Shown here: positions 7,708-57,380 of the stretch, one piece after another
Numbering within the stretch: the first letter of the stretch is position 1
Layout of the letters: every line of letters begins with the position of its first letter
DNA from: Entomortierella parvispora E1425
Taxonomy: Eukaryota > Fungi > Mortierellomycota
DNA length: 64,000 nt
Assembly: GCA_020891255.1 (NCBI GenBank)
Contig: BQFW01000014.1
Location: 124,001 to 188,000 of the forward strand
Reading direction: 5' to 3'
Translations under genes and position numbers: made by a program
Notes under the pieces: model-generated
Database searches by the model: none
The model's input: only the letters and a program-made list of their open reading frames with translations
What the model was told of the DNA's origin: nothing

Positions 7708-7780
7708 CGCCCAACGTGGGGGTCGAACCCACAGCCTTCAGATTAAGAGTCTGACGCTCTACCGATTGAGCTAGCCGGGC
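7708..7780 (-). tRNA. tRNA-Lys(CTT)
   Basis: GCCCGGCTAGCTCAATCGGTAGAGCG TCAGA-CTCTTAA-TCTGA ... GGTTCGACCCC; 73-nt cloverleaf. Confidence 0.97.
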
Positions 7781-7840
7781 TTGATTTGTTGAGTGTCAAT
7801 GTCTCCAGACATCTATATTCTGACATCATTTCACCGAATC

Positions 7841-7868
7841 CACGTGACATTCAATGCGTGGTCACGTG
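7841..7868. promoter_or_regulatory. Two CACGTG E-boxes between tRNA-Lys and the candidate ncRNA
   Basis: CACGTG at 7841-7846 and 7863-7868. Function is inferred from the conserved spacing to tRNA genes. Confidence 0.55.
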
Positions 7869-7926
7869 AGATCGGCCGATTGACATAGCTAGGCCGCAAA
7901 AAAAAGTCCCGGCCGCCGGATTCCTA

Positions 7927-8155
7927 GGCAGCCTTTGGCAGCCCGGTTGGTAGCAAAGGCGGGTAAAATACTGGGGAAGCTTGACTCGAACTTCAGTTTT
8001 AATTCTCTGGAGGATAGTCGTCTGATGGTACCTGGCTGCTCATTTACGGTCCCTTGCAGTCAGGACATAGGACTGTTTCGGCATTGGGGCCGAGTTGTTA
8101 GTTCTCGGCGTGTGGGGATCTTTTCCGGAGCTGAGTACTTTGATAGGAGCTGCCC
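7927..8155 (+). ncRNA. Candidate structured non-coding RNA, family unassigned
   Basis: Complementary ends (GGCAGC/GCTGCC) and several hairpins (GCCTTTG/CAAAGGC, CTTCAG/CTGGAG, CAGTC/GACTG, GCCGAG/CTCGGC). No credible ORF. Strand uncertain. Confidence 0.4.
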
Positions 8156-8853
8156 AAATGCAAAGAGCAAAAAAAAAAAAACAATAGGAGTGAACAAACA
8201 GAAACGGTGAGTGACGAGGGGGGTATCAAAGCTGCTCAATTCTTCTCCTGGCCCTTCGTGATGGCAGTTTGGGTTTTCACCTTTTTTTTTTTTCTACCTG
8301 TAATGGCTGTCCGCTGATCAGTTCTATCAGAAGTATGACAAGGAGTCAGGCGAAAGAGAGGAGGGTTTTCCAAAAGGACCGAAATTCTCTTGGCACGAAG
8401 CGACTCTTTTTTTTATGTCATCGTTCACCCATGACGGGAAGGAATTGGCCCTAGTGAAGCAATGTAGAAAGTACTTGTCTGCGACCCCTTGGATTCATAT
8501 CCATAGCGTCGTTTTCTGGCTCTTTTGCTGTCTTTGGTTATTGTTTGATCACGAAAGGCGACTTGCACCTTTTCGATGTTGGCTTTCTCGATGACTGAAA
8601 CGGTGCCCCGCCGAGACCTTCATCGGGTTGCAACTTCCCTCCTCATAGTCCCCAATAGTTTTGGTACTGGGACAACATCAGCTGGAGCCTGGATCGGTTT
8701 ACGTGACAAGAGTGAAGATGTTCAAGGCTGAAGAAGCAAAGAGTACCCCCTTGAGCATGAACACCATAGCGTCCGTTTCCCCTGGGATGAGATTGTCGCG
8801 AGCAAGTTCCATCCTCCAAGGAATAACGAAGTTTCACATTGCAAAAGCATTTT

Positions 8854-10417
8854 TTATTTGGGATCTTCGCCTTGTCCTAGGGGCTGATAGGCATCAGGTT
8901 TGAACCCACTGTGATGATGGTGATACGACTCAATGTCCTCCATCGGGAGAGCCATCTCCTCGTTTCGGGGCTGCTGACGTGAGAATGGTGGTGGCTGGGA
9001 TGATGCCGAAGTTGTCGCGGGCCCATAATAATTCAAGGCATGCTGATATTCCTCTTGCTCACGTTGGTGGTCTTCCTCAGTTTCGTTTTCATCCGCGATT
9101 AGGCCTTCGTTGATCCTTGCAATCCTGCGGTTTGTGTGTTTGTAGATATACCAGCCTACTGCCAAGGCGAGGACGATCCCTAGAATATTGCTTGCCCATT
9201 TGATCACCCTGTCTCCGCCTTTGATGTTGGGGTCTGAAAGACTCGAGATGTTGTGGCCAATGAAGATCGGGATGAAGAGGCGGGGGGTCGACATGAGGAG
9301 TGGGAGCAAAAACTTCCAATAAGGGAGTTGAGTCATGGAGCCAAAGAAGGCGTTCAGAACTATGTCAACAAAAAAAAAGGTGGAGCAAAAAAGGTGGATG
9401 CAGCAGTCAGAAATAGGCAGCGTTTTCCTATACGTTGTCGATCTTCTTGGCCTCTACTACTGACCTGCAAACGGGAAAGATGAGAGGCGGATGAGGAACA
9501 AAATCTAAAGGAGAGAGACAACCAGAAAGGCACGAAAGTCAGCTTCGATCCAAGCGCCTCCCTCTTTCGAGCCAGTCCATCGAATCCGACTTACGTAGAT
9601 ACCGTCTTTGCTGACCGCTTTCGACATTTCCGTGAACTCAATGTTGTTTCCCAGTTTGCGACGAATATAGTCATGAAAGGCCAATCGGTACAGCCTACAA
9701 ACTGTGGTTAGAATCTCCGAAAGTCCTTTCACATCTTTCCTGAGACTGTCCACATGTCAATCTTACCAGAATCCCGCCGATGCGCCCAAGACGTCCCCTG
9801 CGAAAGCTGGCAAAAACCTTTCAAAGAAATGTTTATGGGTTAACACGGTATTTCAATGAGACGCGCCTGGATTGGGCAAAAGGCAAGTACCCTTTTGGAA
9901 ATCCGTAAATATAACCGCAGACCATGCTGATCACTCCATAACCTATTCCACGTTTGCAAAGTCATCCAAAAGTCCACAACCACAAAGAATAGACCTCTGT
10001 TAGTTGCTTTGCAGGCTGAGGGAGAAAGGTACCTCTCAAACTATACATTCGACTGCAAACAATAAAACAAAAAACCGAAGCACGATTGAGCATAGTACCA
10101 AAGAGAGGGAAGATGCAGGTGGCAAACATGATGGAGGCCATAATCACCATCCCTGCGTTCGAGTTCCGGATGAAGCTGACAGCAGGTTCGATCCCTACGC
10201 CAAAAAAAAGATGAGGTCAGGATGAGGTCATAATATGATGTTCCACAGCTCAATAAAAACAGAGAGGCACCTTACATTCAAAGATCTGCCGTTCAAAGGT
10301 GAAGAATACTATTACAAATGCAAGCACAACAAGAGCAGCCACGACGAGGGCTATCTTGCTGGATGTGCTTGCGTTCTGGAATCGCTCCTTGACCGTGGGC
10401 AAAGTTCGAGTTGCCAT
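8854..10417 (-). CDS. TVP38: Tvp38/TMEM64 (VTT/SNARE-associated Golgi) membrane protein, about 7 exons
   Basis: Spliced model: MATRTLPTV...WIEPAV...FPLFG-YGVISMVCGYIYGFPKG-FLPAFAGDVLGA...ILFLIRLSSFPFA-VLNAFFGS; GT-AG sites join in frame. Confidence 0.85.
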
Positions 10418-10788
10418 TGCGTGTCTTCTTTTTTGTACCTGGAAATGGGAGGGGTGGGGATGGCGATGATGGCGTGAAAGATGGGCAGCCGAGATTTCTG
10501 ATCAACAAGCGGTGAAAAAGGAGGATGAATAGAGAGGAACCAAGTGATGCAAAGAATGCAGTCGAGGAAGAATGCAGCGAATGAATGACTGAATGAATGA
10601 ATGAATGAACGGTCGAGTGGAAGAGAAAGCAAAAAAAAAAAAAAAAAAAAAAAAAAACCCAATGCGTTTTAGACTCGTGTACCCCCTTTATTTGTCTTGA
10701 TTTCACCGGGTGACAGGCTGTGGCGTGTGCGCGCTCATCATCTCCTGCCCGATTCCTTGTCCCTTCCTCTTCTCTCTCGACCACCATC

Positions 10789-13186
10789 TCAGATGCCTCG
10801 GACTGCTCGCGGTCTCTCGTTCCTCTCGACCAGGAGAGTGGCGTGCTCTGCCAAGGCTAGTGTCAGGGTGTGGACCTGATTGGGCTGGACATGGTCCAGC
10901 GTCAGCAGGCCATCCACTAGATCAATCCTCGCCTGGATTTCATTGTGCCATACCATCTTGGACACGATCGAGATCACTGCCGACCTCTCGAGGTCAAACA
11001 TCCCAGCAAGCTGGTCCAGGCCAATGGATGTATAGTGTGTCTTGTTTGAAAACAAAAACATTCGCAACCCTTCCTCTTGAATCTTGCTGTGCAGCATGGA
11101 CCTGGCGCCCTCAGGCCCATCGGATAGTCTGTCCCATGCCTTCATAATCAGATCTGAGCATTGCTGCCAGTCCCAAGCCGCAAGTGCATTCCACGCGCTC
11201 AAGATGTGGTCGCGTGTAGTCTCTGGGGGACCTGAAAAAACTCGGCGATTATAATATTGAAGCGCGCGTTGAAACGGAGTCATTGCCGATCTCTTCAAAA
11301 CACGAGCCTCAGTCTGTCCTGTGGATACCATCGACGAAGAGATCTCCAGGAGCATAGAGCAAGTCAGATAGGTGCATTCAAGCAGCTCCAGATTGAGGTG
11401 CATGTGTGGAGGGATGTGAGACTCATGGCCAAGCAGTTCCCGGGCACCGCCGGTGCCTGAAATATCTTTCAAGCACGTTTGAGCGTCCGCAAACTTCCCC
11501 TGCCGAAAGGCGCAAAGGCCTAGCTGAGCCATTGTCCGATGGTAGAGGACCTTTATGTGAACATCTGCGTGGTGGATGGCTTCTTGAATAGGGGATAGCA
11601 AGAGCAGATCTTTGGCGACTGCGAAGCGGTCGTGAAGAGCATGATGATATGCTTGGCAGAGGATTGCCTGCGCGCGAACAAGGGCTGACCCGTTTCTATA
11701 TAGGAACGCGCAGACCCTGTTGATCAAATCCGATGTATCCTGACCCTGGTCCATGTTGCTTTCAAGTCTCAGAATGGCAGCGTCGCTCTAGAGTAGCAAA
11801 AAAAAAATAGGGATGACCGGATGAGAGTTAGGAGCTGTTGACGACGCAAAGATGGTTGCTAGGCATACAGGAAGTACATGCTTACCCTGAAGTAGATGTG
11901 CTGCAGGCGTTTCATAGACATGTGGCAAATAGCATCCGTCATATCAAGGGTCTCAAAGTATCTGCTGGATCTGACAATAAGAGAAAAGAGGCTGGTTTCC
12001 AAGCGATCAAGATATTCGCTGGAGTTGGGGTCAATGCTCTGAAGAGACTTTGTAAACTCGTTGTCCAAGCGGTCCATCAGGTCGAGAAGAGAGCCTTGGA
12101 TGTAAACCGCTGACCTCCCATCCAAAACGGTTGTAGCCTCGTCATTGTCTTCTACAAAGCTCTCGATGACCACAAATCTTGAATGGGACTCTAAGATGGC
12201 GAATAGTGCATTCAGATGTTGTTCAGTCCTATGGAAGAGATCATTGTCGAGGGTCAAAATGGATCCTTTTTTACTGCTTGAAAATTGACCATTGGAGTAC
12301 GAACCGTTTCCAAAGAGGGATACTCATATGGCTCGAGCTCCCACCAGCAGTGTCAAACAGAGCTTGAAGGAGGCTCAAGAGAACGCGGAGTCTCTTGTAG
12401 GGTGAACTCGCGCGAAGCAACAGGGTCTCCAGTTTACGAACTTGCTCTTCAGGATTGGTATTCTTTTTTCCACGAGCAGACACAACCTGCTGCAGTGTTG
12501 CGAACAGGTCGTTTTCTTGCAGGTTGGCGATGGTTTCTGTTACGGCTCTTGAGGAGGCTGGTGGCTGTGGCGTTCTGCTTTTGTCTTCTTCACAGCCTTG
12601 GCTATGATCTTCAGTCTCCTTGGTGTGCTGAAGGGCGTTCTTTTTGACATTGTGTCTTACCCAGTTTAGGGCTTTGGCTTCAGAAGCACTCATCTTTTTG
12701 GAACCCTCCCTTTCAGTTTCCACTGCCGCCTGGATACGAGTCTCCAACCCTGCAATGGCCTCGAAGTAAAAGCTTGGTACCGATGTTGGACCCATCTTTC
12801 GGAGGACTTTGTTCATACGAGCAAAAGCTGTTTGGTAGGAAAAAAAAAAGTCAGTTGCCGCAGCGCAGAGCACTTCCAGGTCGCAGAAATTACCATGCTG
12901 CGCCTAGACCGGTTCATTCTGACTCACTCGCGCGTCTCTTACCTTTCTGAACACAGAGCCAGCTCCCGCTGGAGCACATCAACTCTAAGGCTTCCTTGAG
13001 CTCATTTTGGCGCCTGGTTGCTGAAGATTGCACCACACGGATAGCCTGTGCAGGGACGTTTATTGCAGAGAAACGATCGAAGGGACGACGAGCCTCTGGT
13101 GATTCGTGTTCATATTCGTGTCCGATGCTCTCGTCTGAGGAGTCTGAAGAGGACGAGTCAGTGTCGCCAATAAAAAATCGTGACAT
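10789..13186 (-). CDS. NIP1: eIF3 subunit c (NIP1)-like protein, 4 exons, appears short and divergent
   Basis: MSRFF start, VFSGPPETTRDHI motif, HIPPHMHLNLELLEC, C-terminal PCI region. Confidence 0.85.
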
Positions 13187-13467
13187 GTTCGATCAGATGG
13201 ATCGTTTTTGATAGTTCCCAGTTTGTTCTGTGGCAGTGGCTGCGGTATTGCTGTTGTTGCTGTTGTTGCTGTTGTAGCGATTATGGACGTCGTTCTCTTC
13301 AAGTTTCTTTGATTGTTGGTTGATCAATTGATTCTGTCGGTTGTGTTTATTCGTGAAATTGGGCAGGAAAGACAAGCTGGACAAAACAGAGTGACAATGG
13401 AAGCGATGAAAAAAAAAAAAAAAAAAAAAAAAAGCAAGTTGTAAGTTGAAAATGAATGACTGCGGCT

Positions 13468-17942: not shown

Positions 17943-17949
17943 TATAAAA
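17943..17949 (+). promoter_or_regulatory. Probable TATA box of the small membrane protein gene
   Basis: TATAAAA about 143 nt upstream of ATG 18092. Confidence 0.45.
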
Positions 17950-18091
17950 GAGACAAGAAGACAGACACCAATTGACCAGCAATTTCAAGTACCTACATCT
18001 CACCGTTTCATCGTCTTCCTGTCCAATTCACCGCAGTCTCTTTCACAGGAGTATATTTCACAGCTACATCTTCACGGAAAGCTCCTTCAAC

Positions 18092-36253: not shown

Positions 36254-36380
36254 ATCGCCTTCCAAAGGGCCTTCTTCAAAGTAGTATTGTCGGTCCTGCC
36301 AAGAAGAAGTAAAGGGATTTGCGCGATGGTCTGCAATGGGCAGACGCCAACTGCTGGGAGGCAAAAAAAAAAATCAAAAG

Positions 36381-36454
36381 TGTTTGTACTCGGACTTGAA
36401 CCGAGGACCGTCTGTGTGTTAGACAGACGTGATAACCAACTACACCATACAAAC
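36381..36454 (-). tRNA. tRNA-Val(AAC), copy 1
   Basis: GTTTGTATGGTGTAGTTGGTTATCACG TCTGT-CTAACAC-ACAGA CGGTCCTCGGTTCAAGTCCGAGTACAAACA. Confidence 0.95.
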
Positions 36455-36585
36455 TTTGAATTCGATATCAGCTGACTTTCTAGATCACCCATAGATCCAT
36501 GACTATCAAATTATTTAATCACGTGATTATTGGTCCGGAATGGATATTTGAGTGATCTAGAAAGTCAGCTGATATCGAATTCAAA

Positions 36586-36659
36586 GTTTGTATGGTGTAG
36601 TTGGTTATCACGTCTGTCTAACACACAGACGGTCCTCGGTTCAAGTCCGAGTACAAACA
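36586..36659 (+). tRNA. tRNA-Val(AAC), copy 2
   Basis: Identical 74-nt sequence in the opposite orientation, followed by TTTT and TTTTT runs. Confidence 0.95.
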
Positions 36660-37852
36660 CTTTTGATTTTTGCCTCCCAGCAGTTGATCTTCCAACATTC
36701 AGGAGGAGGATACTTCTTCACCCCCCAAAAGTGGCGTTTAGGCCCGGGAGGGACTTCGTCACGTGGAGTATATGGCCTTGCACTTATAGAATTGCAAGGA
36801 TATAACGATAATGGTAGGATATAACGTACTCTCACGTGATATCTACACGTGACAACATACGTCATTTAGTCACGTGGATTTATATTGTCTGCCCAAATAG
36901 GAAGGAGTCTCGATCACCCCACAAAGTATAGGGAGACATGTCCGAAAAACAACATCGTTCTATGTGAAGTCATTCAAATCGTATCAGAATGCCATGATTG
37001 TTAGCAATATCGATAGATATGATAAAAATACACCTCTCAAGTGATCGCGAGCAGTTTTGAACAAGTTTGAGAGCGTGTTCATCTTCGTTGTGCTTATTTT
37101 GACTGAAAATGACGAGGGTGTTCGCTATGTTTTGGCTAGTTACCATTGTATATTCAATTACAACACCACTTTCTTCCACATACATCCAAAACTTTCAGAA
37201 TCCATGCCCTTTCCAATGTACATACTGTGAATGCGCTTTATTCGGTCAACACGCCTCGAAAAAAAGAACTTCACTTAGGAGCAAAGTGATCGACTTGGAA
37301 AAAAAATAGAATTTTGATGCATCTGAGGACATTTGTCTCGACTTTCCATGGTCAGAATTGCAACAATTGGGCTGAAAGCACTTTCCTGAGGTGGCCACAC
37401 ATTGTACGAAGAACGTAGTATCGTTTTCCTGCCAAAGAACGATTCCTCTAGAGGGCAATTGGATGAGTCATTCAAAGTAAAATGAACTTCTGACTACAAT
37501 TTTACAGTAGTAATGCCTCAGCATGATGACAAGCTCTTGGCTGTTTTCCAAAGAAGTACTATTCATAGGCAGGTGTCGCGATATACATGTTATTAAAAGT
37601 TGGAAGAGGTTTGGCTTCCGGATTCAGAGCTATCATGGTTCCTGAGATAGAGATATTGCTGCCATTTTATTTGTTTTTTTAAAAAAAAGAGCTCCCAGAA
37701 GGAGTATTTCCTCAGGAAACCCTGGGCCATAGGAACAGCAACCGAGATTGCATCAGAACTTGCGAAAGAACACTGCCAAATCATATGGTTGAACTATGAT
37801 CGATCATGTCGCATCGAAGATAGAGTGGGCTGTGTGTTTATTACATTATTAT

Positions 37853-40727
37853 TTAGAAGACTTGTCTACGTTTGTGTACGGCATTGAAGTGCAGAGGAGC
37901 TCTATTAACCATCTGACCAATACACAACGTTGTCTGTTGCAAAATGGAGGTGATGTCCTCCATCTCCTTGTCATCTTTGCTTTGCACGAGGCTAGATAGG
38001 ATGTTGATCTGCTCTAGAGCTTTAAGCCTCCACTTCGCGGCCTCTCGTTGCAGATGCCTCCGTTCTTCATCTTCGTCGTCCCCTGTTACTATTGATTCTG
38101 TCCCTCCCAAAACGACAGCAGCCGTTTCTTCTCCAGGCTCAATGCCAGCCAATAGCTTGTCCTTAGTGTCCTTTGACTCTGGAAGCACAATAGTTGTCAT
38201 GGACCCATGAAAGTTGTTGTCAACTGGTAGTTGAATGTTTGGAAACATGAGGGTAGCAGCAATGATATGTTTGCAAGGCTGAAGACGGCGCTTGAAGTCA
38301 GGGCACTCACAGGCCCGAATTGTGGGTGGATATGTCGTATGAATTGCAGTGATCTCGTACTCACTCCCATCAGACTTATCAAACGAGGTAATCCAGAGAC
38401 GGTTCGAAAGGGTGTCATGTCGGAAGAGCTGGAGCCTTTGTTGAGCGGTCAAGTTCCTGAAACGACGCTGCACAGAAATCAATCGATCCTGATATTCTTT
38501 TTGTATTTTTTGATTGCCGTCCGAGGTTCAACGTAGCTGTGTTGATAATACTCTGGAAGTATTCGACGACAGCACCAGAGAGTACATTGATCACAGTGTC
38601 AAGCCGGGGACTCTTGTTGTCTCGCAGGAACTTCGATTTCAGTTGACTGTGCCAGCTCTCCACATAGTTGTTGGTGTTGATGTCGGCCCAATATACATCA
38701 CTCCGGTATGCGCGCATCCACTGTTCTCGCTTCTCCAGAGTAAAGCTGGTAGTGTCAAGGTATTCGAGGACTTCCGTGTAAGCACTGTCTAGCGTTAGAG
38801 CCTGGCGAAGGCTTTGCTGGAGTAGAGAGGCCTGGTCGGGATCTTGAGTGTACATCATACGGCGCAACATCTTGAAGATCACCTCGCGGGATTTGTCATA
38901 CTGACGCTTTAGTTGTGCCTTCTCGTCTTTGTTCTTGCCGGTCATATCTGGATGGATCTTGCCAGGGAGAGCTCGAGCCCATGCGCGCTGAACGTGCCAG
39001 AGGCAGAGCTGAATCTTGACATCATCGAAGGCATAGTTGATGGCATTCTTCTCGATGTAGCTGTCGTCAACCACAATTGTTTTCACAATGCAATACGGCT
39101 TGTTTGACCCTTCTTGAACCATGAGTTGGCACCGCACATGACTCAGCCAAAGGCTAAGAGCCGAAGCTGACATATCACTCGTAAGAAAAAAAGCTACTGG
39201 TATTCCTTTTCCAGAGGAGTGCGCAACCACAATTGTGTAAAGTTGCGTGTTGTCATGACGGGTTGTTCCATGGGTGGCATCAATGCTAAAGCCAGCGCCG
39301 AATTGTTGCAGCATCTTCCGCTGCCAAGGGGATATAAATCCAAATCCAAACCGTTCCTTGGGACCAGTCTTGGCAGTTGGCGGTTCAATTGGCTGTTTAT
39401 CGGGTGCAACGGATTCAATAAAAGCAGCCAATCGACCCTGCTCGAGATTTAGGCCGACAGCCATTTTCTCAATGAGTGCAAAAGCCACTCTGTCTGATGT
39501 AGGAGTGGGATTCTTACCACGGGCAGGTTTCCGAGGAGCGTCTCGTTTCATTCGACCATTATCCACCAAGATATCCTTTCCCCCAAAACTGCTGGAAGAA
39601 GACCAAGCACCATCAGGTGCCTCATCGTATTCAAACACGGAGAACCCCTGTTCTCGCAATTTCGTTCCCCACAGACGCATAGATATTCTCTCATCTTGGT
39701 CAAGCTGAGAAGTAATCCGTTGGCGACGAATGTCTATATTATAGATGTCTTCCTTCGTGATGGCCCTATCTCTAGCACACTGAATATCGAATTGCGACTT
39801 GTCCTCCGGCGGCGCTTTCGAAAGCTTTTCATAGATGAACCGACGAGAGTGTCCTGCATCGAGCATCCTCTCAACCTGTTCCCTTCGCCATTTGGACAGG
39901 CGACAATGCCTGATATTCTCGATGGAATTCGTTTGGTGCCCTGTATGGTACGGTCTGTATGTAACAACGGCCTCTTCTGAGTTCTTGTAATACTTGACGA
40001 GAACGTATGACTTACAGCCAACCTTGCCACTGATCTTTTGACGCGGACGCTTCTTGAGTACATTCTCTGGAAAATCATCTTGGGTGGGGTCCTCTTTAAG
40101 GCTGCAGTCGCTGTCTGTACTAGAGTTGTCGTCTTCTGCTTTAACCTTGGTAGCCGAGCTGCCCTGTCGCCGGCGCTTCTTAGGGGTACCAGCGTGCTGG
40201 CAGAAGTATCTGACGGAGCATTCGAGGGAGGACTTCGTACTCTTCGACTTCCTCTCCTCCTTCTTCAGGTATTTGGTTGAAGCAAGACGCCCCTGTTCAA
40301 ACAGCCAGGGAATGACCATCGATTTGTCCATGCGCTTTTCGATTAGTCGGTTGTGATTAGGATGCCGCGGAAGGAGGTCCCCGAAAACCTTGGTCCACAA
40401 AGGAACAGGAGCTTCCTGGTCGTTCGGGGGTTCGACGGGTATCTCCAAGTTCTCAGTAACTTCCGATGAAGACACTGAGGCCGGGTATTCGACATCCTGA
40501 GCAGCCTCCTGGATATCCTCATCCTCATTGTCGCTGGAGTCCGAGGATTTATCTGAGAAGAAGCAGACTTCAAATGCAGGGTCTTCAACGACTGATGGGG
40601 TGACAGGGCAATCCTGTGGGGCCACATAGGTCTAACAGGAAGACAAAAGTGTGTCGATATCATTAGTATCCACATATCTCAATTAGCCTACTGCGAGACA
40701 TGCCATGCCATACCATACCTCTTCCAT
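37853..40727 (-). mobile_element. Mutator-like (MULE) transposase gene with C-terminal SWIM finger; one frameshift
   Basis: N-terminal C...C...HxxH zinc DNA-binding region; FSIDATH, VVDDS, CLWH and TNNYVESWH catalytic motifs; SWIM CECPDFKRRLQPCKH. 5' intron 40632-40718; frame break at the A6 run 38506-38511. No TIRs identified. Confidence 0.85.
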
Positions 40728-41506
40728 GTTGCAGGACTATATCGCGTAAGGGCCTCGCGTTGCCTGGTGAATGGAACGTGTTAATTCAGGTTGCATTTCT
40801 TCTCTAATTCTTTTTGTTGATCCGTCCTTCAATAGAGCTACAGCCTACCTGGCAACGCTACTGTTGTCTGGGGTATGAGGGGAGGGTGAGGGGAGGGTAA
40901 GGGAAGAAGCAAAGGTGTTGTGAGGGACGGTCAGGAACGTTTGTTTTTGTGCATTGTGATGACGTGCTGATTTTGTGCACTAAGGGAGAACTCAGGTCAA
41001 TGCACGTGATGGCACGTGGTGGCACGTGATATTTGGTGGCAATGTTTTTATGGGGGGCACATAAGGTAAATCTTCAGGAGGTGCGAAAGATCTACCCGCC
41101 GACCCTGGTTGTCGTTTTCTTTTCCACCGACCAGGGGGTGGGCGGGGCTTTTCTTTTTGGGTCCGACCGCTGACAACCGACCCCTCTCTAAACCACCGAC
41201 TTCCTCTTCTTCTATTCCCCCGCCCATGGTCAGAGAATACGTTAAATGGTGAATCTGAAACTGCACCTGGAGAAGAATTGAGTATCATGTATTTATATAT
41301 AGCAATGCGGCAAAGACTACAACCATAGCAAGCCAACCCATTGGACCCAGTTTTGATTTGGCGGCTTGCTGGCAATCCAGACCACTCTTTTTTTTTTTTT
41401 TGACCACAAAAAAAAAAAAAAAAGTCCCTGCCCCTGTCATCTTCAGCTTGTTTTCTTGTTTTCGTAAGAACTTTGCGTCCACCCAGCTTTACTTGCAAGT
41501 AAGATC

Positions 41507-43459
41507 CTATTTCCACTCAACTCTCGATTGTTTCAAACAGCGTTTTGTCTCGCTCATGACAATTATGTCGGTATCTGCATCATCGATTAGGTAATTACGT
41601 TCCTCAATGTCATCGTCCGAGGGAATGCTAAACACCTTTTCCGATTTGATAGAACAAGCCGGGATTGCCAGATACTTTCTCGCAAGTTGTGACATAACGG
41701 GGAACTCCGTTCGGTGCTTGAACCACCACTGACAGGGATCCACGTCAATATCATTGCACTGTCGACGCTTGAAGTATCCCTCGAATTCGCCATTTGGTTC
41801 CCCGTCCAGCATGTCTATAAGCTGCTGAGCAATTTCTTGCCAGGTGTTGGGTGCTGCGATCACCGAGACAATTTCTTTGTACTCACCAAGGAGCATTGCT
41901 TTGATCTCCTTGAAGCGAGACTCGTCAATCTTGTTCAATAGGCGGTTAAACGTTGGGTGGAACAATGACGCCTTCATCAAGGAGTCTGAATCGATCACCC
42001 GCGCCGAAAGCTGTTCCTGCAAGTGACCTCGGAAATCTTCAATTTCCAAAACGGTGGCTGCTTGACCTTCCAATTTCATCGAGAGGACAGTGCTCCAAGG
42101 AAGTATACAGGCCGCAAGGCCACTGGAAGTAGCCTGGCCGAGAGCCTTCTGGGCCTCCTCCTCTAACAGAGTCAAGATCGTCACAGTCTCCTTGACGTGA
42201 TTCCATTCGGATTCAGTAAGCATCAATTTCTCGAGCTCCTCCATGTCATCAATTTTCAAGGTCGACGACATCAACGACTCATAGACGGAATCAACGGTAT
42301 CCTGGAGCTGTGCGAGCCGACGTAGCATGTCCAAGGTACCGTTCCACCTGGTCTTGTTGTCTACTATGATTGTCAGAGGCATACTGTTGGAGAGCTGCTT
42401 CTTGTACTGCTCTCCTATGAGGACTCGAGTCAACTCTGAGCTGTCGTAAAAGAGGGTGGCTAGATTGCGGCACTTGTTGACAATCCTGCCAAGCTCCTTG
42501 CTCTGATGCAGCGCATCGAGCACAGAGTTGCGCAGGATGCTTGCGATACACGGCGAGTGGGGCAAGTTGGCAAGTTCGGACACCTTCATCATGACAACCG
42601 CATTGTCCATCGTGAGACCAGTGATCTTTCCATCAAACCCCTTCTTTGAAATGGCATCTTCTACAGGTTCGAGGGGAGAAGAGGGCAGTTAATTTTTTTT
42701 TTTTTTTTGAAGGCACGCGTCGTTGCCCTCACGAAATCGTTCAATTCACGTGAAATACGTGATCCACTGCGCAAGATGCATGGATCAAGGATGTGCACCA
42801 CTCTTCTCGTTGTCAGCCATTCCCATTTGCTTACCAACCAGCTTCTGAATCGACTCGGCATTGTAAGGAATTGGGTGCGGGGCAAGATCCAGAGTGCACT
42901 CAAGCTTATGAAAGTTCTTGTCGAGCCAGTGCAGATTTAGACCCAAGAGTAGACGGTGGCCGCTGTTTGTCCAGTCCTCGATTGAAATGGCCCCTGACGA
43001 GAATGTCTCCTCGAGCAAGTTCTTCAGCTGTTGTTCAAGCTCGAGTCGGTGACCATCCAACTTGGACTGCACCGCGGCTGTAGACGGAGGCGTTGAATGT
43101 GGATCGGCAAGCTGCATTAATTTCTGGAACGATGTCGAGTCAAAGAGTGAGAGGGGCACGTACTCCTCAACGACCCAATCCAGCAGAGCAGAGACTAAAG
43201 CCTCCTGCTTTGCCGTAGATCTTGATGTATCAGAGGGTACTGATTGGATCCTGGCCATGCTGCTGCCCTTGAGAACGTATTCCTGGTACAGTCTAGGGTG
43301 GTCTTGCATGAAATGGTACTTCATCGTACTGGAGCTACTTCCCGTGGAGTAGTCCTTTCGACAGCACGGTGCCTTACAAAAGAAACGTATGTGATAGGCA
43401 CCGTTGATCTTTTTCCGGCCAATGTTGAACCATCCAGCCCAGATCCCTGGCGTGAAGCC

Positions 43460-44262: not shown

Positions 44263-44333
44263 TGAAAGTGCCGGGACTCGAACCCGGTTCTCAGGCTTGG
44301 AAGGCCGGAATGATACCCATATACTACACTTTC
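44263..44333 (-). tRNA. tRNA-Gly(TCC)
   Basis: GAAAGTG TA GTAT ATGGGT ATCAT T CCGGC-CTTCCAA-GCCTG AGAA CCGGG TTCGAGT CCCGG CACTTTC A; 71 nt. Confidence 0.88.
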
Positions 44334-44397: not shown

Positions 44398-44436
44398 CAC
44401 GTGATCGGTGACGTCATCTCCCGGATTGGTCACGTG
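44398..44436. promoter_or_regulatory. E-box / CRE / E-box module between divergent tRNA-Gly and calmodulin
   Basis: CACGTG 44398-44403, TGACGTCA 44409-44416, CACGTG 44431-44436. Confidence 0.5.
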
Positions 44437-46182: not shown

Positions 46183-47894
<1,712 letters not shown>

Positions 47895-49874
47895 TTAGAT
47901 ATGAGGGTATGAATGTGGGGGGTATGGGGTATGAGGTATGTGGAGTGTGGGTCCTGGATTCTTGTTCAGGGGTGAATCCCGAGGGTGTTCACAGGCAAGT
48001 CAGATATGATTGTTCAAAAGGCCTTTCTTTTTTTTTAGCGTAGGAAAGGTGAAGGGCGGGCAGGTCGTGAGGTTGGGGAGCAAAGGGGAAAACGCCAAGG
48101 CCAGTTGGGCTCAGAGGACCGGTAAGTACGTGCGGGTTTGTGTATTCGTGAGTCCTTTGCTGCGGTGGTGAAGGCAACTGAGGGCAAGAGTAGAGGAGGG
48201 CAGTGAGGTGCAACGCACAGAGGAACAAGGCGAAAGAATAAAAGGAAAGGGCTGGAAGGGATGCAGGTGAGAGTTGGTGTGGACGGGCAGTTGTTGAGTG
48301 GGCAATGTGGTTCGAGAAAGGTCTGGAGCGCGTGGCAATCACACCGAGGATGAGTCGACTAGGTGGGGGGGGGATGAAGGTGAGAATCAAGTCAGAGCAG
48401 CCGGCAGAGTCGTCAAGATGAAGGGCTGGATAGGTTTGGTTGGATTGTATGGATGGAAGGAAAGAATGAGGGAACGGAGGGACGAAAAAAGAAGGAAAAA
48501 GAGAAGAGAAAAAAAAAACACGAGAGCGCAAGCCAATGTCGCTTCTCAGTCCTCGAGAGGGCGCGCGGAGTGGGAATGGAATGAGGTGAGAGCGACGAGA
48601 AACAGGGAGTAGGAGTAGAGGGAGAGAGCGAGAGCGAGGGAGGGGACAGTAATGGAGGGGGCTGACTGCATTGGAAGAAGAAAGAGAGAAAGAAAGAGAG
48701 GGATGAAGAGGATCATCAGCGGGTGCCAGCCAGTCCCACACCCACATTGGACATTGCCATGGGTCATGCAATGCATGCATGAGTGTGTGTGCATTGCATG
48801 CGGGTTAGCCTGTCAACTCGGACAGCGTTTTGGTGGCGTTTTTTTTTTTTTTTTTTTTTTTTTGGTTGAGTGGGACTCGTCTTTTTTTTTTTTTTTTTCT
48901 TGTTCATCCTGGAGGACCATCCTTCACCCAGCCAGTCCGCTCCGCCCCTGTCTGTGACAGACAATGAGCTCAAACAGGGATATCCAGTGACGAGAGGCTC
49001 TTGTAATTTGCTTCCGAAATTGAACTTTGGAACCTTGCTTGACTTTGACGACGTGTTGTTTGTCGTTGTTCGTTGCTGAATTGTGTTGTGTTGTTGGTGA
49101 TGGTCTCCCCCCAGCTCTATTCTTTCTCTTCCGGGAGAAAAAGAGAGACAGAGACCAGAGAAAGGAGGGAGCCAGCAGCAAAGAGGGGCTGGAGAACATG
49201 TCGATGCAGACAGGAATGGCCCACCCACCAGAAAAGCAGATCAGATTTTCCACGACCAGACTCTCAAACTCCCCACAGCGGCTGAAAAAAGGAGCAGACA
49301 GACCCGCCGAGACGTGCGTCATTTCGCGCGCTAGCTTGCACTAGTCCAACTTATTGGCTGGACTGGACCGGGTACTCGGACCTCTTCAGTCTCATTCGCC
49401 TGCAATATAATTGAGATATTGCCGGCTGCCCACTCACAGACACTCACAGTCTGGTCATGACATTACAAGTGCTTGTACTCAATTCCAGTAGCAAATTGGC
49501 TCGGTGCTCGCCCTCTCCACACCATCCCGCCACAGACGAGATCTCCTTCCTTTTACCCATTGTCCAACGCTGTGTAACCCATCTTTTCTAACCCTTTCTT
49601 TCTGTTTCTTTTCACCTTTGTTCCCCTTGGTTCTTCCCGCTCTCGCCGACTCAGCCGTCTTGTTCTTTTCTCCTTTCTATCTTTCACCCATCGACCCACC
49701 TGATTGCCACTGTTGTGCTTCATCGCGTGGTATTTATCTTCCCCCTTCACTCTTCCCATCACGCAATCCCTCTCCGATCTCTCTCCTCCTGATCATCATC
49801 AACAAGCACAACAAACAAACAAACACAATCTGCATCAATTGCGACTACGGCACCAGCTAGGAAACAACAACAAG

Positions 49875-52800: not shown

Positions 52801-53723
52801 GACATGGACTCTGAGGCTTGTGGGCAAGGGCCTGGCTCAGGTTTGCCTCGTGGGTTTGAAGAAATCGAAGACAGTAAGTTCTTTATTACTTCGCCTTTTT
52901 GATATGTTTGGTCCTTATTTCTGATGCTGATATTTTCATTCCGCCCATGTTTTCAGCTTTCCCATCGCCAGAACCGCGTATTGTCTCTCCTCCTTCGTCA
53001 ACATGCGAAGTCGTTCCCAATGTTGACCAGCCCGAGGATAAGAACTTGAGACCGGTTCAGGAAGACATGAGTCGCTTTCTCGATATGGCATGTCAGATTG
53101 AACCCGCGCTCTTTGACTGCCGTTCAACTCAGTACAAGGTCTTCAGGGTGGATGAATTCCGCTGGGAGGATGATGCCTCGGCTCTTCTTTCAAAGTGTTT
53201 GCCTGAGTTGAGCGAAAGCCTTGAAGACGAGTTCACGGAGTCACTGAACTTCACAGATTTGAGCTTCTTTGATGCCACCGAAGAACAACATGACGGCGGC
53301 GTGGACACTTTCGCCTTCCGTCAAGCAATTTGGTTTTATACCCTGCGACTTTTTGGCCTCCTGCACCAGGACTACAACTACCGCAACCTCTCTAGATTTA
53401 TGAACCCAACGCTGGCAGCCTACGTTCGTAAGGCATGTCATGGTATTTCCATGGTAGAAGCCCCGGCCCCTTTGGATGATGCGGAAGGCCAGCGACAACC
53501 CAGCCAGTTTTTCCTCTCTGACATGAACAAGGTTGACAAGAATGACTTTGATAACATGGGCTTTGAGCTTCGACCTGAGGAACGATGCCACGTCAATATC
53601 ATTGTCATGGAGGCATGTAAGCAGGCCAAGCTTATGTATGCTCTGCGGGCTGTTGATCGTTGGGAACGCAAAGCGGAAGGCGGCGCCGAGGATGAAGACG
53701 AGGGTGCAGAGGAGCGATTCTAA
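49875..53723 (+). CDS. SESN: Sestrin (PA26 family), multi-exon
   Basis: GPGPIPKPWRCYVAIM-AASQYNCQY, NGLMAHQPWL, ELAQVMVIMSTIHS, FRQAIWFY, ERCHVNIIVMEACKQAKLMYALRA. Confidence 0.88.
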
Positions 53724-54338
53724 ACAACACAAGGCTCTAAAAGTGTTTGTTCAGAAGATGTCCTCTTCAGTTTTCCAGCCAGCAACCCATTGCACAGCAC
53801 TGCATGTCATTTTATTTTGTGCTACGCACAGCACTTTTCTTCTCTGTTTCCAGCAGCTCACTTACCCAAAATAGGAGACCCAACCTTGTTGTTGGGCGAC
53901 CTGACCCCATGCATGGCCCAACCCATCAGATACCCTTTTTTTTCACTCGCCTACCATACCCAGCCGACGCAAAAGAAAATAAACAGCAGTATAAAAGAAT
54001 CCGAGGTCTAGATCATGATTGCTACCGAGGTGGCGTAGGTAAAAAAAAGGGGAGGACATGGGCGAATCCCCCAGCCCATGTTGCATGCTTGTGGCGGTGC
54101 AATTCCTCTTCGTCAGGCTCACAAAGCATCATCACAACACCGCAAATAGGTTGAGTGGTGCGCTGGACACACGCCCAGGCTTGCACCCTCTTTTTTTTTT
54201 TTTTTTTTCTTTTTCAATCATTCATCATTCCGCTTTCCTCCCATGGGCAAATGAAAATCTCGACCACCCCATTCCATTCGTCCACCTGCACGTTCGTAAC
54301 CCCTTGAAGCCATTTTTATATTTCTATCCTCTCAAACC

Positions 54339-57087
54339 ATGGGCAAATTCTCGAGACCCAAACGTCCAACGGTGTGTGGTGTGCCTCTCACAAACGAGCT
54401 TCTGCTGCGTGTCATCCTTCTTGCAGTCACGATCGGAGCTTTGGCTGCGGCAACAATACCCAAGGTGAAATCGATCCTGCAGCAGAGCAAAGTTGTATCC
54501 GTGACCATGACGGACGATACCACTATCCCGGTCCCAGGCACCTTGGTCTGTGGAGAGCTCCTTGACCATGTCCAGGTTCAGATGGTAAACCGTGGGCGAC
54601 TTCTTGCCAATGGGTCATGGACACCCGATACAGTGCGGGATGTACCTACCAGTAAGTTTCCAGTTCCCTTTCCCATTTTTCTTTTTTCATGTGTGTTTGT
54701 TTTTGTTTTCTCATTCTTTTTTCGCCCTGAATAATTTTCTTCTTGTACTCGTCGGAAGAGACCAAAGCATGCTAGAGTTGAGTCTGTATTCTTGTACTTT
54801 TGGTTTGGGTACAAGAAGAGCAGATGATGAAAGAGGGAGTCTTCACAACAAAAGAAAACTTACGCGTTCTTTCCCACAACGACTGCTAGGTATGTACTCT
54901 GTCAAGCCAGCCAACACTTTAAATCTGCGAGCGAACGGAGATTGGCCGACCCTGGGCAATTGTGTTATCCTAGAGCCTCAAGGAATCTGGTATTCTAACA
55001 ACCCCCTCGGAGAAGTGGGCGATGTAAGACCATCACCGTCGGTGATTGCGGCTGGCACTAACGTATATTGAAATGACTTGTGGTTTCAACGCGACAAAAC
55101 TGAGCACAGCCCATTGTCTCCTCCACACCAATAGGCCTGCATCGACTCCATCGTTATTGTGGCCCTGAGCAAAGCGAACTTTACAGCTCAAAACGACATT
55201 GGACTTTCCATCGCTATCTGGGTAAAGAACAACGTTCACTTTTTCTTCTTGCGGTACCGTGCATCATGCTGAATACGAGTCCCACCCCTTTTTGACTATT
55301 AATAGGATGGAAACGTGTACATGGGGGACCAACAACCGATTTGGACCGGTATCCGTAAGTCAAGCCCAAGCACCAACTAAGCCTGATCTTGCATGCATCT
55401 CCTCTTGCATCTAACTCTCCACCGCGTGTGCATCGCCAACGTTCAATCTAGCCTCAATCAATACCCTGACGTTTGTCTACAGTGAGCTCATCCCTCTGGG
55501 CGCACAGGCTCCACAAACACATTTCACCATGCAAAAGGTTCGGTCCTCCAAACCGCTGTCAGTATCCTTTTCTTTCTCATCCTTCAGGCTCAGCTCACAT
55601 GTTGTCATCTTCTTGACTCTTCTTGTAGCAAAACCTCCGCTTCATGAGTGCTGGATTCTTTGCAAACCAAACAGTGATTGGCAGGGTTGTATTATCCCCG
55701 GATACATTCTTTGTTACGCGTTATTTCGACAAGCCAAGCTACACTTGGGTCGATCTCGCTGGAGCTATTGGAGGGTAACATCTATTTATTTATTTATTTT
55801 TAAAAAAAAAAAGTCATCCTCTAACCTTTTGCCATACACCATTCTAGAATGGCCTCCATTGCCCTCGCTATTTGGATTTTCTTGTTTGGAAGCGGAAAAT
55901 ACAAGAGTTGGGGTGTTGTTCAACGCTACGTCCTCCAGACTTCGCCCAACTCAAGACGTTTCCGTGGATCAAATAACGATGAGGCAAAGCCAAAGAACCC
56001 ATTTGAAGCCGCCAAGATGTTCGTACGGAGTCAAATACAGCGTTTGGATACCAGTGCAGAGCACGACGTGGACAATGTTCCTCTCCAGTCGTCAACTGAG
56101 GAGCACCGACGCGTCCTTTCAGCCCGGTACAGCAAGGCATTTGATATGGAAGTAGCAGCAGCAGTCGCATCAGGGGCTACCATGACGCGAAACGGAAACG
56201 GTGGCGCTCGGGAACGAGGTGTTTCGCCCATGGACGGAAACAACAACGACGATGTGGATCATAGGATATCCCAGTATTCGCTCGATGCAAATGCTCCGCC
56301 CAACTTTTACTTTTCGGATCAAGGAGCACCCCTGTCAAGGTCATTGCAACCTCTGAGACCAATTGGTAGCTCTGCAGATGACGCGGAGGAGCAAGTGGAT
56401 GAATTGATCCGACTAATTGATCTGAGGATGGATGAACGTATGTGGAGTTTGGAAAAGACGCTGTCTCGCTATTACTTGGACGGATTCCGATTGAGAAACT
56501 ACTCAAGTCCGCGCTCTTTCCGTTTTTCTGACACCAAAGAGCAAGGTCAAGGCAATTATCTGGACTACGGATCAGGCAATGAGCAATTTGGCCAATACCC
56601 TCCATCCCACGCTGAGCTGTTGCAGGATGGTGCAGACAATCGTGCAGGTGCTGGAGAACAACAAGTTGGTCAGCCACTGTCTCCTACTTCTTTTCCAACT
56701 GCCCCTCAATACCCTCCTCGTCCTCAAGTCCGGGACCAGTTCGACTATGTGATAGCTGTTCACGAGCATGCGCCACCACCCTCAATAGGAATTTCGCCCG
56801 TTCAGGACGACGACTCCAAGTCAGACTTTACCTCTCCTTCAGTTTCTTCTACGTCGGCGACTCCATTCCTGAACCCTGGATTCCCGGAACGTAAAGATAT
56901 GAGAGGCACCATCCGCCGGGCCGTGGAAAGACTACAGCAGGAGTGGCCACAAACCCATTCGAGCTATCCTATCGCGACGAGCGCCTATGTGCCGAGAACA
57001 CAATATGGCACGCAATACCAGCAACAACAACAAAATCAAGGTCATCCACACCCCAGTCAGGGCCAGAATACGGGAAACTACTACTAG
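54339..57087 (+). CDS. Two-TM membrane protein with a large ectodomain, DEG/ENaC/PAC-like motifs, 7 exons
   Basis: Spliced model: TM1, then VVSVTMTDDTTIPVPGTLVCG, about 215-aa loop, VVLSPDTFFVTRYFDKPSYTWVDLAGAIGG-MASIALAIWIFLFG (TM2), long disordered tail. The gene is well supported; the family call is tentative. Confidence 0.7.
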
Positions 57088-57210
57088 GAACCAAAGAACC
57101 GCTTTCCCAGGGTGCAATAAACGCGCTTTCGCCCGTTCCTACTCTCCTTCGCCGCATTTTTTTTTCGTTTTTTTTCGCGATTCAATTAAGGGTGTATGAC
57201 CTTCATTGAT

Positions 57211-57236
57211 CACGTGAGCAGGATGTTAGTCACGTG
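57211..57236. promoter_or_regulatory. Two TCACGTGA E-boxes upstream of tRNA-Tyr
   Basis: CACGTG at 57211-57216 and 57231-57236. Confidence 0.55.
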
Positions 57237-57297
57237 AATGTCTCGGAATCCTCTGGTTTCTGAAGGTCCGGGAGTTCCCGGTTAACATCAACAACAT

Positions 57298-57380
57298 CCG
57301 AAAATAGCTCAGTTGGTAGAGCGGGAGACTGTAGTTTGTCTGTCATCTCTAGGTCCCTGGTTCAAATCCGGGTTTTCGGA
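57298..57380 (+). tRNA. tRNA-Tyr(GTA) with a roughly 10-nt intron
   Basis: CCGAAAA TA GCTCAGTTGGTAGAGC G GGAGA CTGTAG[intron]A TCTCT AGGTC CCTGGTTCAAATCCGGG TTTTCGG A; C1:G72 and A73 are typical of eukaryotic Tyr. Confidence 0.95.

Follow-up and report, generated by a model that had tools for sequence, protein, structure and literature searches.

A preferentially positioned E-box palindrome upstream of nuclear tRNA genes in Entomortierella parvispora, a putative site for a Cbf1/USF/TFE-type factor

Textbook promoters of tRNA genes are internal, being made up of the A and B boxes; upstream there is at most a CAA or TATA-like signature. Global control of tRNA synthesis is ascribed to Maf1 and TFIIIB rather than to DNA-binding regulators. 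The bHLH protein Cbf1, which is known to act at centromeres and Pol II promoters, recognizes the CDEI word RTCACRTG. A flanking T sets Cbf1/USF/TFE-type bHLH sites apart from those of Myc/Max, which disfavours T...A flanks.

Among the closest described systems are the gene-external TATA-like and CAA elements of plant and yeast tRNA genes, which modulate the transcription of type 2 Pol III genes from an upstream position (PMC3082873). At about -30 and -7 to -3, they are covered by the TFIIIB/TBP footprint and read by the basal machinery. No E-box word of the kind described here was reported when 11 plant and animal genomes were compared (PMC3082873). A bHLH-zipper CACGTG factor that influences Pol III is known from mammals, where Myc-Max binds an E-box in the spacer of the 5S rDNA; Myc reaches mammalian tRNA genes by protein contact with Brf1 and not by a positioned E-box (PMC4482074). 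In fission yeast, the GATA factor Gaf1 binds tRNA genes and regulates them downstream of TORC1, and the accessible text of that report describes no conserved, positioned upstream DNA word (PMC7068653). Work on Cbf1 at the ribosomal protein genes of Candida albicans never mentions tRNA (PMC2834713). In the full-text literature that was searched, no E-box is described upstream of fungal tRNA genes.

Nuclear tRNA genes of the soil fungus E. parvispora frequently carry upstream a palindromic E-box with the consensus R-T-CACGTG-A-Y (RTCACGTGAY). Its core and its flank preference are those of Cbf1/CDEI and USF/TFE sites, which are palindromic, dimer-bound and orientation-independent; the E. parvispora motif is likewise a palindrome and would share the other two properties. 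Unlike the known Cbf1 targets, the sites precede Pol III tRNA genes at a preferred spacing, and their binding by a Cbf1 orthologue is putative. In common with plants and yeast, E. parvispora has a TATA-like block, here at about -38, and CAA-rich sequence, here around -10. The E-box, by contrast, contains G+C, is palindromic and lies at -66 and beyond, outside the TFIIIB/TBP footprint. With respect to Myc/Max, the T...A flanks found here are of the Cbf1/USF/TFE kind, and no fixed upstream position has been described in mammals. Gaf1 resembles the proposed factor in being a sequence-specific Pol II-type transcription factor at fungal tRNA genes but belongs to another factor family, acts as a repressor and gives ChIP signal near tRNA start sites.

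The window, by which we mean the whole 64,000-nt stretch of DNA analysed, contains five tRNA genes on which ARAGORN and Infernal (RF00005) agree (Table 1). The distances at which a sequence-only reading had placed CACGTG upstream of these genes are correct at all five, second copies included, and for tRNA-Tyr vary by 1 nt with the 5' end that the program assigns. That reading had also put seven of about 15 CACGTG hexamers close to tRNA genes, and a scan finds 7 of 16, at gaps of 60-97 nt from the 5' end of the tRNA that they precede. The hexamer is not in excess in the window overall (16 against 12.4 +/- 3.1 expected). Two E-box clusters in the window lie apart from any tRNA gene (36760-36876 and 41003-41028). 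Neither has an Rfam match, even at E = 1, and they do not form terminal inverted repeats of the intervening MULE element.

Table 1. Positions of tRNA genes and upstream elements in the window
Feature	Position	Strand	Basis
tRNA-Lys(CTT)	7708..7780	-	ARAGORN; Infernal RF00005, 68.2 bits
TATA-like block of tRNA-Lys, ATATAGA on tRNA strand, about -38..-32	7812..7818	-	Paralogue alignment
tRNA-Lys nearest E-box (GT-CACGTG-GA), gap 60 nt upstream	7841..7846	.	Conserved column block, six Lys-CTT paralogues aligned
tRNA-Lys second E-box (TCACGTGA), gap 82 nt upstream	7863..7868	.	Window scan and Lys-CTT paralogue alignment
tRNA-Val(AAC), inverted pair, left copy	36381..36454	-	ARAGORN and Infernal
Single E-box (TCACGTGA) common to the two divergent Val genes and halfway between them, gaps 65 and 60 nt	36520..36525	.	
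tRNA-Val(AAC), inverted pair, right copy	36586..36659	+	ARAGORN and Infernal
tRNA-Gly(TCC)	44263..44333	-	ARAGORN and Infernal
tRNA-Gly nearest E-box (TCACGTGA), gap 64 nt upstream	44398..44403	.	
TGACGTCA palindrome, flanked by the two Gly E-boxes	44409..44416	.	
tRNA-Gly second E-box, gap 97 nt upstream	44431..44436	.	
Second upstream motif of tRNA-Tyr, TTAAGGG(T), gap about 105 nt	57186..57192	+	
tRNA-Tyr second E-box (TCACGTGA), 80-81 nt upstream	57211..57216	.	
tRNA-Tyr nearest E-box (TCACGTGA), 60-61 nt upstream	57231..57236	.	
tRNA-Tyr(GTA), intron-containing	57298..57380	+	ARAGORN and Infernal

The motif, with defined flanks and at a preferred position, is spread over unrelated tRNA families and coupled to tRNA genes throughout the genome. 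We used a 354-kb sample of the E. parvispora genome containing 46 nuclear tRNA genes and drawing on 10-kb stretches at 29 loci out of 59 nuclear tRNA hits. The -130 to -40 zones of the 46 genes (3.8 kb, 1% of the DNA) hold 42 of the 78 CACGTG hexamers in the sample, with 36 in the remaining 350 kb, an enrichment of 107-fold (binomial P 3.7e-61). A histogram of CACGTG over +/-1 kb around the tRNA genes has one peak, at -120 to -41, and is nearly empty outside it. Carrier genes have one to three copies in a zone that runs from 50 to 115 nt ahead of the mature 5' end. For the whole genome, we counted matches to CACGTG-gap-GGTTCRANYCC, where the second word is the tRNA B box, with reversed patterns as controls. 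Gaps of 67-97, 98-128, 129-159 and 160-190 gave 7, 98, 72 and 9 matches, with 0, 0, 2 and 1 in the controls, such that the two central bins hold 170 matches against 2. The site is borne by about 115-121 distinct B-box anchors, with real B-box matches numbering about 229 (537 matches minus 308 in the control).

The positional enrichment that the sequence-only reading had proposed to look for genome-wide is thus borne out by the histogram, the zone counts and the B-box gap counts. Its statement that every tRNA gene has an E-box is true of the five genes in the window but fails beyond it: 27 of the 46 sampled genes carry a site, and the motif is present at about 50-59% of E. parvispora tRNA genes, about half genome-wide. 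Because some 40-50% of tRNA genes do not have the motif, the E-box is not required for Pol III transcription. Nor is the distance fixed, as had been supposed. There is instead a preferred zone in which the nearest copy starts between -54 and -95, with 20 of 28 at -63 to -78 and a mode at -66/-67, and copies in the sample are spaced 12-33 nt apart without fixed phase. This variability in distance and spacing is evidence against contact with TFIIIB of a rigid, architectural kind. The yeast TFIIIB footprint spans 10-40 bp upstream of the start site, and the start site in turn precedes the mature 5' end by about 13 bp (PMC5052057). By this geometry the edge of the footprint is near -53, and an E-box at -66 to -61 would therefore lie just outside TFIIIB, in keeping with the sequence-only reading.

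The sites in the upstream zones also differ in their flanks from CACGTG elsewhere. Among 47 zone sites, T is found at -1 in 44, A at +1 in 40 and R at -2 in 39, whereas sites outside the tRNA zones have random flanks, with the T...A pair at 5 of 35 background hexamers. The upstream zones of the sample contain 32 copies of the octamer TCACGTGA, and the remaining 350 kb contain 5; genome-wide, 78 of its 635 occurrences fall in a single 31-nt bin before tRNA genes, against 0 in the control. Outside full E-boxes, the half-site ACGTG is not enriched upstream of E. parvispora tRNA genes (1 against 3.3 expected), so the element is the full palindrome. The CACGTG core, the T at -1, the A at +1 and the purine at -2 are features of Cbf1/USF/TFE-type sites, which agrees with the bHLH assignment made from the sequence alone. 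The preference for C or G beside the core seen at Myc/Max-type sites (CCACGTGG) is absent, with C at none and G at two of the 47 sites at -1.

Two further elements accompany or replace the E-box upstream of tRNA genes. One is a second enriched motif, TTAAGGGT; a reading of TTAAGGG as a telomere-like repeat was rejected, as its tandem dimer is absent from the assembly. The other is a TATA-like box, with TATA-like words peaking at -50 to -31 in the sample. A AATATAGATGTC block is invariant in the Lys-CTT paralogue alignment. The promoters are not of type 3 (gene-external, with PSE/DSE plus TATA): all 46 sampled genes are canonical tRNA genes by Infernal, and 42 carry the B box GGTTCRANYCC. Neither is the E-box a basal A/T-rich upstream element inside the TFIIIB footprint, since it lies at -54 to -95 and is not A/T-rich; the separate TATA-like block does answer to that description. 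Infernal found no 5S, U6 or other RNA genes in the 354-kb sample.

Recent paralogues are among the carriers (four Lys-CTT copies, a Val pair and a Leu pair) and, together with the unremarkable number of CACGTG in the window, this might suggest that the pattern arose by chance, from base composition or through shared descent of duplicated tRNA loci. That reading is already refuted by the counts, both the sample P value and the genome-wide matches set against reversed-pattern controls, and by the presence of the motif in 21 of 36 unrelated upstream-sequence clusters and in 14 of 18 anticodon families of the sample. When six diverged Lys-CTT paralogues are aligned, two E-boxes and the TATA-like block stand out as islands of identity amid diverged DNA. 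A tie to mobile elements, with the motif as a landing mark of tRNA-targeting retrotransposons or a remnant of their ends and without a role in tRNA transcription, is suggested by a Ty3/gypsy element that inserts 17-34 nt upstream of tRNA genes. We regard it as very unlikely. The E-boxes of 21 independent clusters sit in unique, unrelated flanks with no element nearby, and the LTR has no CACGTG beside the tRNA and, where inserted, separates the tRNA from its E-boxes, such that the motif is neither inside repeated element DNA nor at its junction. At tRNA-His a 610-bp solo LTR provides a natural disruption, and taking it out of the sequence restores a gap of about 60 to an E-box. To our knowledge, known tRNA-targeting elements read TFIIIB or TFIIIC and not an upstream DNA word.

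The factor could also be another dimeric protein with an ACGT-core site, such as a bZIP of the plant G-box or ATF/CREB type, in place of a bHLH protein. Plant bZIPs and bHLHs both bind CACGTG. In E. parvispora, the palindrome TGACGTCA, ACGT-centred like the E-box, occurs in three upstream zones and nowhere else in the 350-kb remainder of the sample, and the 7-mer TGACGTC is enriched (8 against 0.44 expected). We nevertheless consider a bZIP decidedly unlikely, because TGACGTCA is rare relative to the E-box, the R-T...A-Y flanks agree with the Cbf1/CDEI word RTCACRTG, and the CATGTG variant TCATGTGA of related contigs has no ACGT core yet fits that word and has the same form as a Cbf1p site that PMC5052057 quotes for yeast. 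A different role for the bound protein would be that of a boundary, shielding the tRNA gene and TFIIIB from incoming Pol II or spreading chromatin, and protecting neighbouring genes too, without activating Pol III. The E-box occupies the outer margin of the Pol III complex, and its copies frequently come in twos and threes. In yeast, TFIIIB roadblocks Pol II about 65 bp upstream of tRNA genes, and Cbf1p sites act as weak roadblocks themselves (PMC5052057). That same weakness, and the sufficiency of TFIIIB alone in yeast, count against a boundary (PMC5052057). A promoter-proximal role also accords better with the preference for a certain distance from the tRNA start and with the conserved spacing relative to the TATA-like box; on balance we think a boundary unlikely.

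We consider it probable that RTCACGTGAY is a selected gene-external cis-element of E. parvispora nuclear tRNA genes, a putative Cbf1/USF/TFE-type site that would aid TFIIIB. We infer the identity of the binding protein and its effect on transcription as follows. The nearest copy, usually at -63 to -78, would stand directly upstream of the expected location of TFIIIB and about two helical turns upstream of the TATA-like box at about -38. It would most likely be bound by a homodimeric bHLH-zipper factor of Cbf1/USF/TFE type, for which the genome offers at least 23 HLH-domain loci as candidates. As a palindrome, the site should act independently of orientation and could serve divergent tRNA pairs in common; the pairs Val/Val, Lys/Ile, Lys/Glu and Phe/His have E-boxes in common. 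The bound factor would most likely hold the upstream region nucleosome-free and help or stabilize TFIIIB assembly, and a Pol II-type regulator might thereby give input to tRNA transcription, with TTAAGGGT as a second element able to accompany or replace the E-box. A bolder version, possible but doubtful, is that Mortierellaceae have a composite, Pol II-like tRNA promoter in which a Cbf1-like E-box factor, a TTAAGGGT factor and the TATA box together recruit or license TFIIIB. If so, sequence-specific DNA-binding proteins would link about three quarters of tRNA genes to growth control as one regulon, and Pol III would have a layer of control undescribed in any eukaryote.

A palindromic factor word that precedes half of the tRNA genes of a fungal lineage and hardly occurs elsewhere would provide a clear example from nature of factor-specific, gene-external input to type 2 Pol III genes. 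The same anticodon family includes genes both with and without an E-box. The shortness of the motif and the availability of both kinds of gene within a family make the proposal directly testable, and Mortierella species are cultivable, some of them transformable. The E-box could also serve as a simple marker in the annotation of active tRNA loci and in work on site choice by the tRNA-targeting retrotransposons of E. parvispora.

The motif appears to occur in other Mortierellaceae at lower frequency. The Lys tRNA is not kept in the Rad21 neighbourhoods of Gryganskiella, Lobosporangium and Actinomortierella wolfii, nor the Val tRNA in the MFS-gene neighbourhoods of Actinomortierella; tRNA positions are thus not syntenic. 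A Ty3/gypsy polyprotein search for tRNA loci in named relatives matched only E. parvispora and short contigs. In the named relatives the evidence is thin: the upstream zone of a Lobosporangium tRNA-Tyr has no E-box, Benniella and Dissophora Lys-CTT genes have only an ACGTG half-site (-64/-65), and Gamsiella multidivaricata Lys-CTT has TCACGTGC at -55, the Lys upstream regions of these last three genera having diverged beyond alignment. Across related Mortierellaceae DNA, the motif lies upstream of 6 of 16 independent tRNA genes, less consistently than in E. parvispora. Among 12 metagenomic tRNA-Val genes of Mortierellaceae type, five have CACGTG at -57 to -121 and three more have TCATGTGA near -61; on one such contig, the neighbouring gene is 66-71% identical to Actinomortierella proteins.

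ARAGORN and Infernal/Rfam agreed on five nuclear tRNA genes in the window (see the table). The hexamer CACGTG (E-box) occurs 16 times, against 12.4 +/- 3.1 in shuffled sequence, and is therefore not in overall excess across the window. Seven of these 16 copies are placed 60-97 nt before a tRNA 5' end, and the spacings between E-box and tRNA gene reported by the sequence-only reading are all exact. The two Val-AAC genes have a single E-box lying centrally between them, which is common to both.

We extended the analysis to 29 ten-kb stretches around tRNA matches elsewhere in the genome, which together with the window amount to 354 kb and contain 46 nuclear tRNA genes, each called by both ARAGORN and Infernal. 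A histogram of CACGTG within 1 kb on either side of the tRNA 5' ends has one peak, made up of 47 site-gene pairs at positions -120 to -41 (counted from the mature 5' end), with 0-2 sites per 20-nt bin outside it. At least one E-box is present in 27 of the 46 genes, and 14 of the 18 sampled anticodon families are represented; within the Lys-CTT family, seven genes have an E-box and four have none.

Across the whole assembly (38.9 Mb, 20 contigs) we counted matches to CACGTG followed by a gap and the B box GGTTCRANYCC, which is matched by 42 of the 46 sampled tRNAs, and used the reversed pattern as a control. Gaps of 98-128 nt (approximately 47-77 nt to the tRNA 5' end) gave 98 matches and gaps of 129-159 nt (approximately 78-108 nt) gave 72, compared with 0 and 2 in the control. 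The flanking bins gave 7 matches versus 0 (67-97 nt; approximately 16-46 nt) and 9 versus 1 (160-190 nt; approximately 109-139 nt). Thus, the positional enrichment that the sequence-only reading had put forward as its check is found genome-wide. By itself the B box matched 537 times, versus 308 for its control, implying approximately 229 genuine tRNA genes, and about half of these (approximately 115-121 distinct B-box anchors, counted by hand over the four gap bins) have at least one E-box. For the octamer TCACGTGA there are 635 genomic matches, versus 380 for its control; 78 of the 635 fall within one proximal 31-nt bin upstream of tRNA genes, where the control gave none. The tRNA-upstream E-box is therefore a real and genome-wide feature of E. 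parvispora, although the earlier claim that it precedes every tRNA gene holds for the five genes of the window and not beyond them.

Features of the window, of other sampled E. parvispora loci (L002-L029) and of one metagenome contig (L036)
Feature	Location	Strand	Source or context
tRNA-Lys-CTT	7708-7780	-	ARAGORN + Infernal/Rfam
tRNA-Val-AAC, left of divergent identical pair	36381-36454	-	ARAGORN + Infernal/Rfam
tRNA-Val-AAC, right of divergent identical pair	36586-36659	+	ARAGORN + Infernal/Rfam
tRNA-Gly-TCC	44263-44333	-	ARAGORN + Infernal/Rfam
tRNA-Tyr-GTA	57298-57380	+	ARAGORN + Infernal/Rfam
Inverted duplication forming the Val-AAC pair	36340-36700		~35 nt upstream and terminator flank duplicated on each side
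Rad21/SCC1 ORF	3540-5639	-	
ORF with MULE transposase domain	38415-40625	-	between Val and Gly tRNA genes
ORF with hAT dimerisation domain	41507-42610	-	between Val and Gly tRNA genes
E-box cluster without tRNA	36760-36876		four sites within 117 bp; no Rfam match nearby
E-box cluster without tRNA	41003-41028		three sites, 10-bp period; no Rfam match nearby
Second word TTAAGGGT/ACCCTTAA	57186-57192		also upstream zones of L002, L009, L015, L021, L022, L024
TGACGTCA	44409-44416		also L005 and L014 upstream zones
CGCCACCAA/TTGGTGGCG outside tRNA zones	16063, 16790, 32049, 48830		
Ty3/gypsy element upstream of tRNAs (Asn, Met, His)	L003:5019-9999; L005:5040-9308; L029:5467-6076		
bHLH protein gene, Mortierellaceae-type contig	L036:5196-7184	+	663 aa; ~1 kb from tRNA-Val

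The E-box is part of a longer consensus, R-T-CACGTG-A-Y, with T at -1 (44 of the 47 sites), A at +1 (40) and a purine at -2 (39). Starts of the nearest E-box range from -54 to -95, with 20 of 28 at -63 to -78 and a mode at -66/-67; one extra site is at -33, adjoining a retrotransposon LTR. Additional copies occur 12-33 nt farther upstream in no fixed phase, and no enrichment of half-sites was found upstream of the sampled E. parvispora tRNAs. Divergent gene pairs other than Val/Val also have E-boxes in common, two each for Lys/Ile and Lys/Glu. Among six diverged Lys-CTT paralogues, two E-boxes, a AATATAGATGTC block (approximately -40 to -30) and TCAACAA (near -10) are conserved and the remainder has drifted. 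TATA-like words peak at -50 to -31 in the sample. The yeast TFIIIB footprint covers 10-40 bp upstream of the start site, which itself precedes the mature 5' end by approximately 13 bp (PMC5052057); if this geometry is valid in E. parvispora, the nearest E-box would abut the upstream edge of TFIIIB.

An unbiased search for enriched k-mers in positions -150 to -1 ranked the E-box first, followed by ACCCTTAA/TTAAGGGT, an 8-mer present 13 times in the upstream zones (0.07 expected), in either orientation and mostly at -70 to -110. This second word, as CCCTTAA, is present in 15 of the 46 genes, nine of which lack an E-box and six of which have one; 21 genes have the E-box only and ten have neither. 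Genome-wide, at B-box gaps of 120-150 nt, CCCTTAA gave 13 matches (control, 1) and TTAAGGG 23 (control, 0), for a total of 36 versus 1. A telomere-like tandem repeat was ruled out as the source of the word, its dimer having no matches. Among minor companions, the palindrome TGACGTCA is confined, within the 350 kb sampled, to three tRNA upstream zones; another copy precedes a Lobosporangium tRNA-Tyr gene (locus L031). Mild enrichment of CGCCACCAA/TTGGTGGCG at -140 to -1 (5 versus 0.2 expected) accompanies frequent occurrence elsewhere, and this may be a general promoter word of the genome. With the E-box, the second word and these companions, the tRNA upstream region resembles a small composite promoter.

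Chance is a highly improbable explanation of the E-box pattern. With each site counted once, 42 of the 78 CACGTG in the sample fall inside the -130 to -40 zones, which make up 3.8 kb or 1.1% of the sampled DNA, a density 107-fold over that of the rest (binomial P 3.7e-61). After paralogue removal by BLAST clustering of the upstream 140 nt, 21 of 36 independent upstream sequences retain an E-box. Sampled CACGTG sites outside the zones are randomly flanked, and just 5 of 35 show the T...A pair. A link of the E-box to retroelements that target tRNA genes is improbable. Of the ten genes lacking both words, three carry a Ty3/gypsy LTR 17-34 nt upstream; the element has a 610-bp LTR and a 1415-aa ORF with gag, RT, RNase H and integrase domains. 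The sample contains no LINE. At one of these loci (L029) a 610-bp solo LTR separates tRNA-His from the two E-boxes of a divergent tRNA-Phe, and in silico removal of the LTR and its short target duplication places tRNA-His approximately 60 nt from the nearer E-box. This tRNA-His gene, at least, had an E-box before the LTR inserted. Very probably, in our view, the E-box is a cis-element that is under selection and specific to tRNA genes.

A palindromic site that has strict flanks, is often multicopy and is used in both directions bears the hallmarks of a dimeric DNA-binding protein. T...A next to CACGTG separates sites of Cbf1/USF/TFE-class bHLH-zipper proteins from those of Myc/Max, and the flanks seen here point to the former class as the putative reader. 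At least 23 HLH-domain loci are present in the genome, among them C15:2408013-2408168 and C7:888527-888670. A candidate bHLH-type factor bound just outside TFIIIB could hold the upstream region open, aid TFIIIB assembly and supply a growth-linked input to tRNA genes, a model that we judge, taken whole, to be reasonably likely. Less probably, the same element is read by a bZIP-type factor recognising ACGT palindromes, or acts as a roadblock or boundary, for which there are yeast data (PMC5052057).

The upstream signatures of plant and yeast tRNA genes are TA-rich sequence close to -30 together with CAA at -7 to -3, and in animals a conserved upstream word is absent (PMC3082873). In mammals Myc arrives at tRNA genes via Brf1, and E-box use is limited to the 5S spacer and the vicinity of 7SL genes (PMC4482074). 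Among fungi, ChIP places S. pombe Gaf1 on tRNA genes (PMC7068653), and C. albicans Tbf1 and Cbf1 have been studied jointly as ribosomal-gene regulators in a paper that nowhere mentions tRNA (PMC2834713). In a full-text literature search, whose coverage left out most subscription journals, no report of fungal tRNA genes preceded by a positioned E-box was found. The positioned E-box would be a new, putative variation on upstream control of Pol III transcription.

The window Rad21/SCC1 ORF is 95% identical to E. parvispora 'cohesin complex subunit SCC1', its next-closest relatives being from other Mortierellaceae; the sequence-only reading was right to suppose an early-diverging fungus. When window positions 1-8000 were set against loci from relatives (L030, L031 and L047-L054), the Lys-CTT gene adjoining START/Rad21 was absent in Gryganskiella; in Benniella, Dissophora and Gamsiella a Lys-CTT gene lies several kb downstream of Rad21, and in Lobosporangium a Tyr gene is found there. 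Because tRNA genes are not kept beside Rad21 or an MFS gene between genera, comparison of synteny yielded little. The named relatives contributed four independent genes. The Lys-CTT gene of Gamsiella multidivaricata, which is present as two identical copies, has TCACGTGC at -55; those of Benniella and Dissophora show just ACGTG at -64/-65, and Lobosporangium tRNA-Tyr has no E-box within the zone.

Exact matches to the initial 26 nt of the Val-AAC tRNA, which is unusual in sequence, were sought among JGI metagenome contigs and found in 14, of which 12 have full upstream sequence. CACGTG is present at -57 to -121 in five of the 12, with flanks unlike those of E. parvispora, and TCATGTGA near -61 in three more. 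These three (L034, L036 and L040) are tRNA-Val paralogues from a single metagenomic organism, in which TCATGTGA(T/C) replaces the E. parvispora TCACGTGA; at another paralogue (L038) there are two ATCACGTGCC sites. RTCACRTG is the yeast CDEI word, which TCATGTGA fits. A Cbf1p site of the same form, ATCATGTGAC, is quoted in PMC5052057. Overall, the motif is present in 6 of 16 independent genes from metagenome and Mortierellaceae relatives, all in-group, which is far above the 1-2% expected by chance and below the E. parvispora rate. One metagenome contig (L046) has four E-boxes, and its adjacent MFS gene is 66-71% identical to Actinomortierella and 42% to Entomortierella and Gryganskiella proteins, indicating a distant genus of Mortierellaceae.

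Both tRNA-less E-box clusters of the window flank the MULE transposase ORF, one on each side, and no terminal inverted repeat joining them was found. The bHLH gene on L036 may be near tRNA-Val by coincidence; the nearest PDB chains to its HLH domain are SREBP, MITF, USF, Max and Cbf1 (E 3e-6 to 1e-3).
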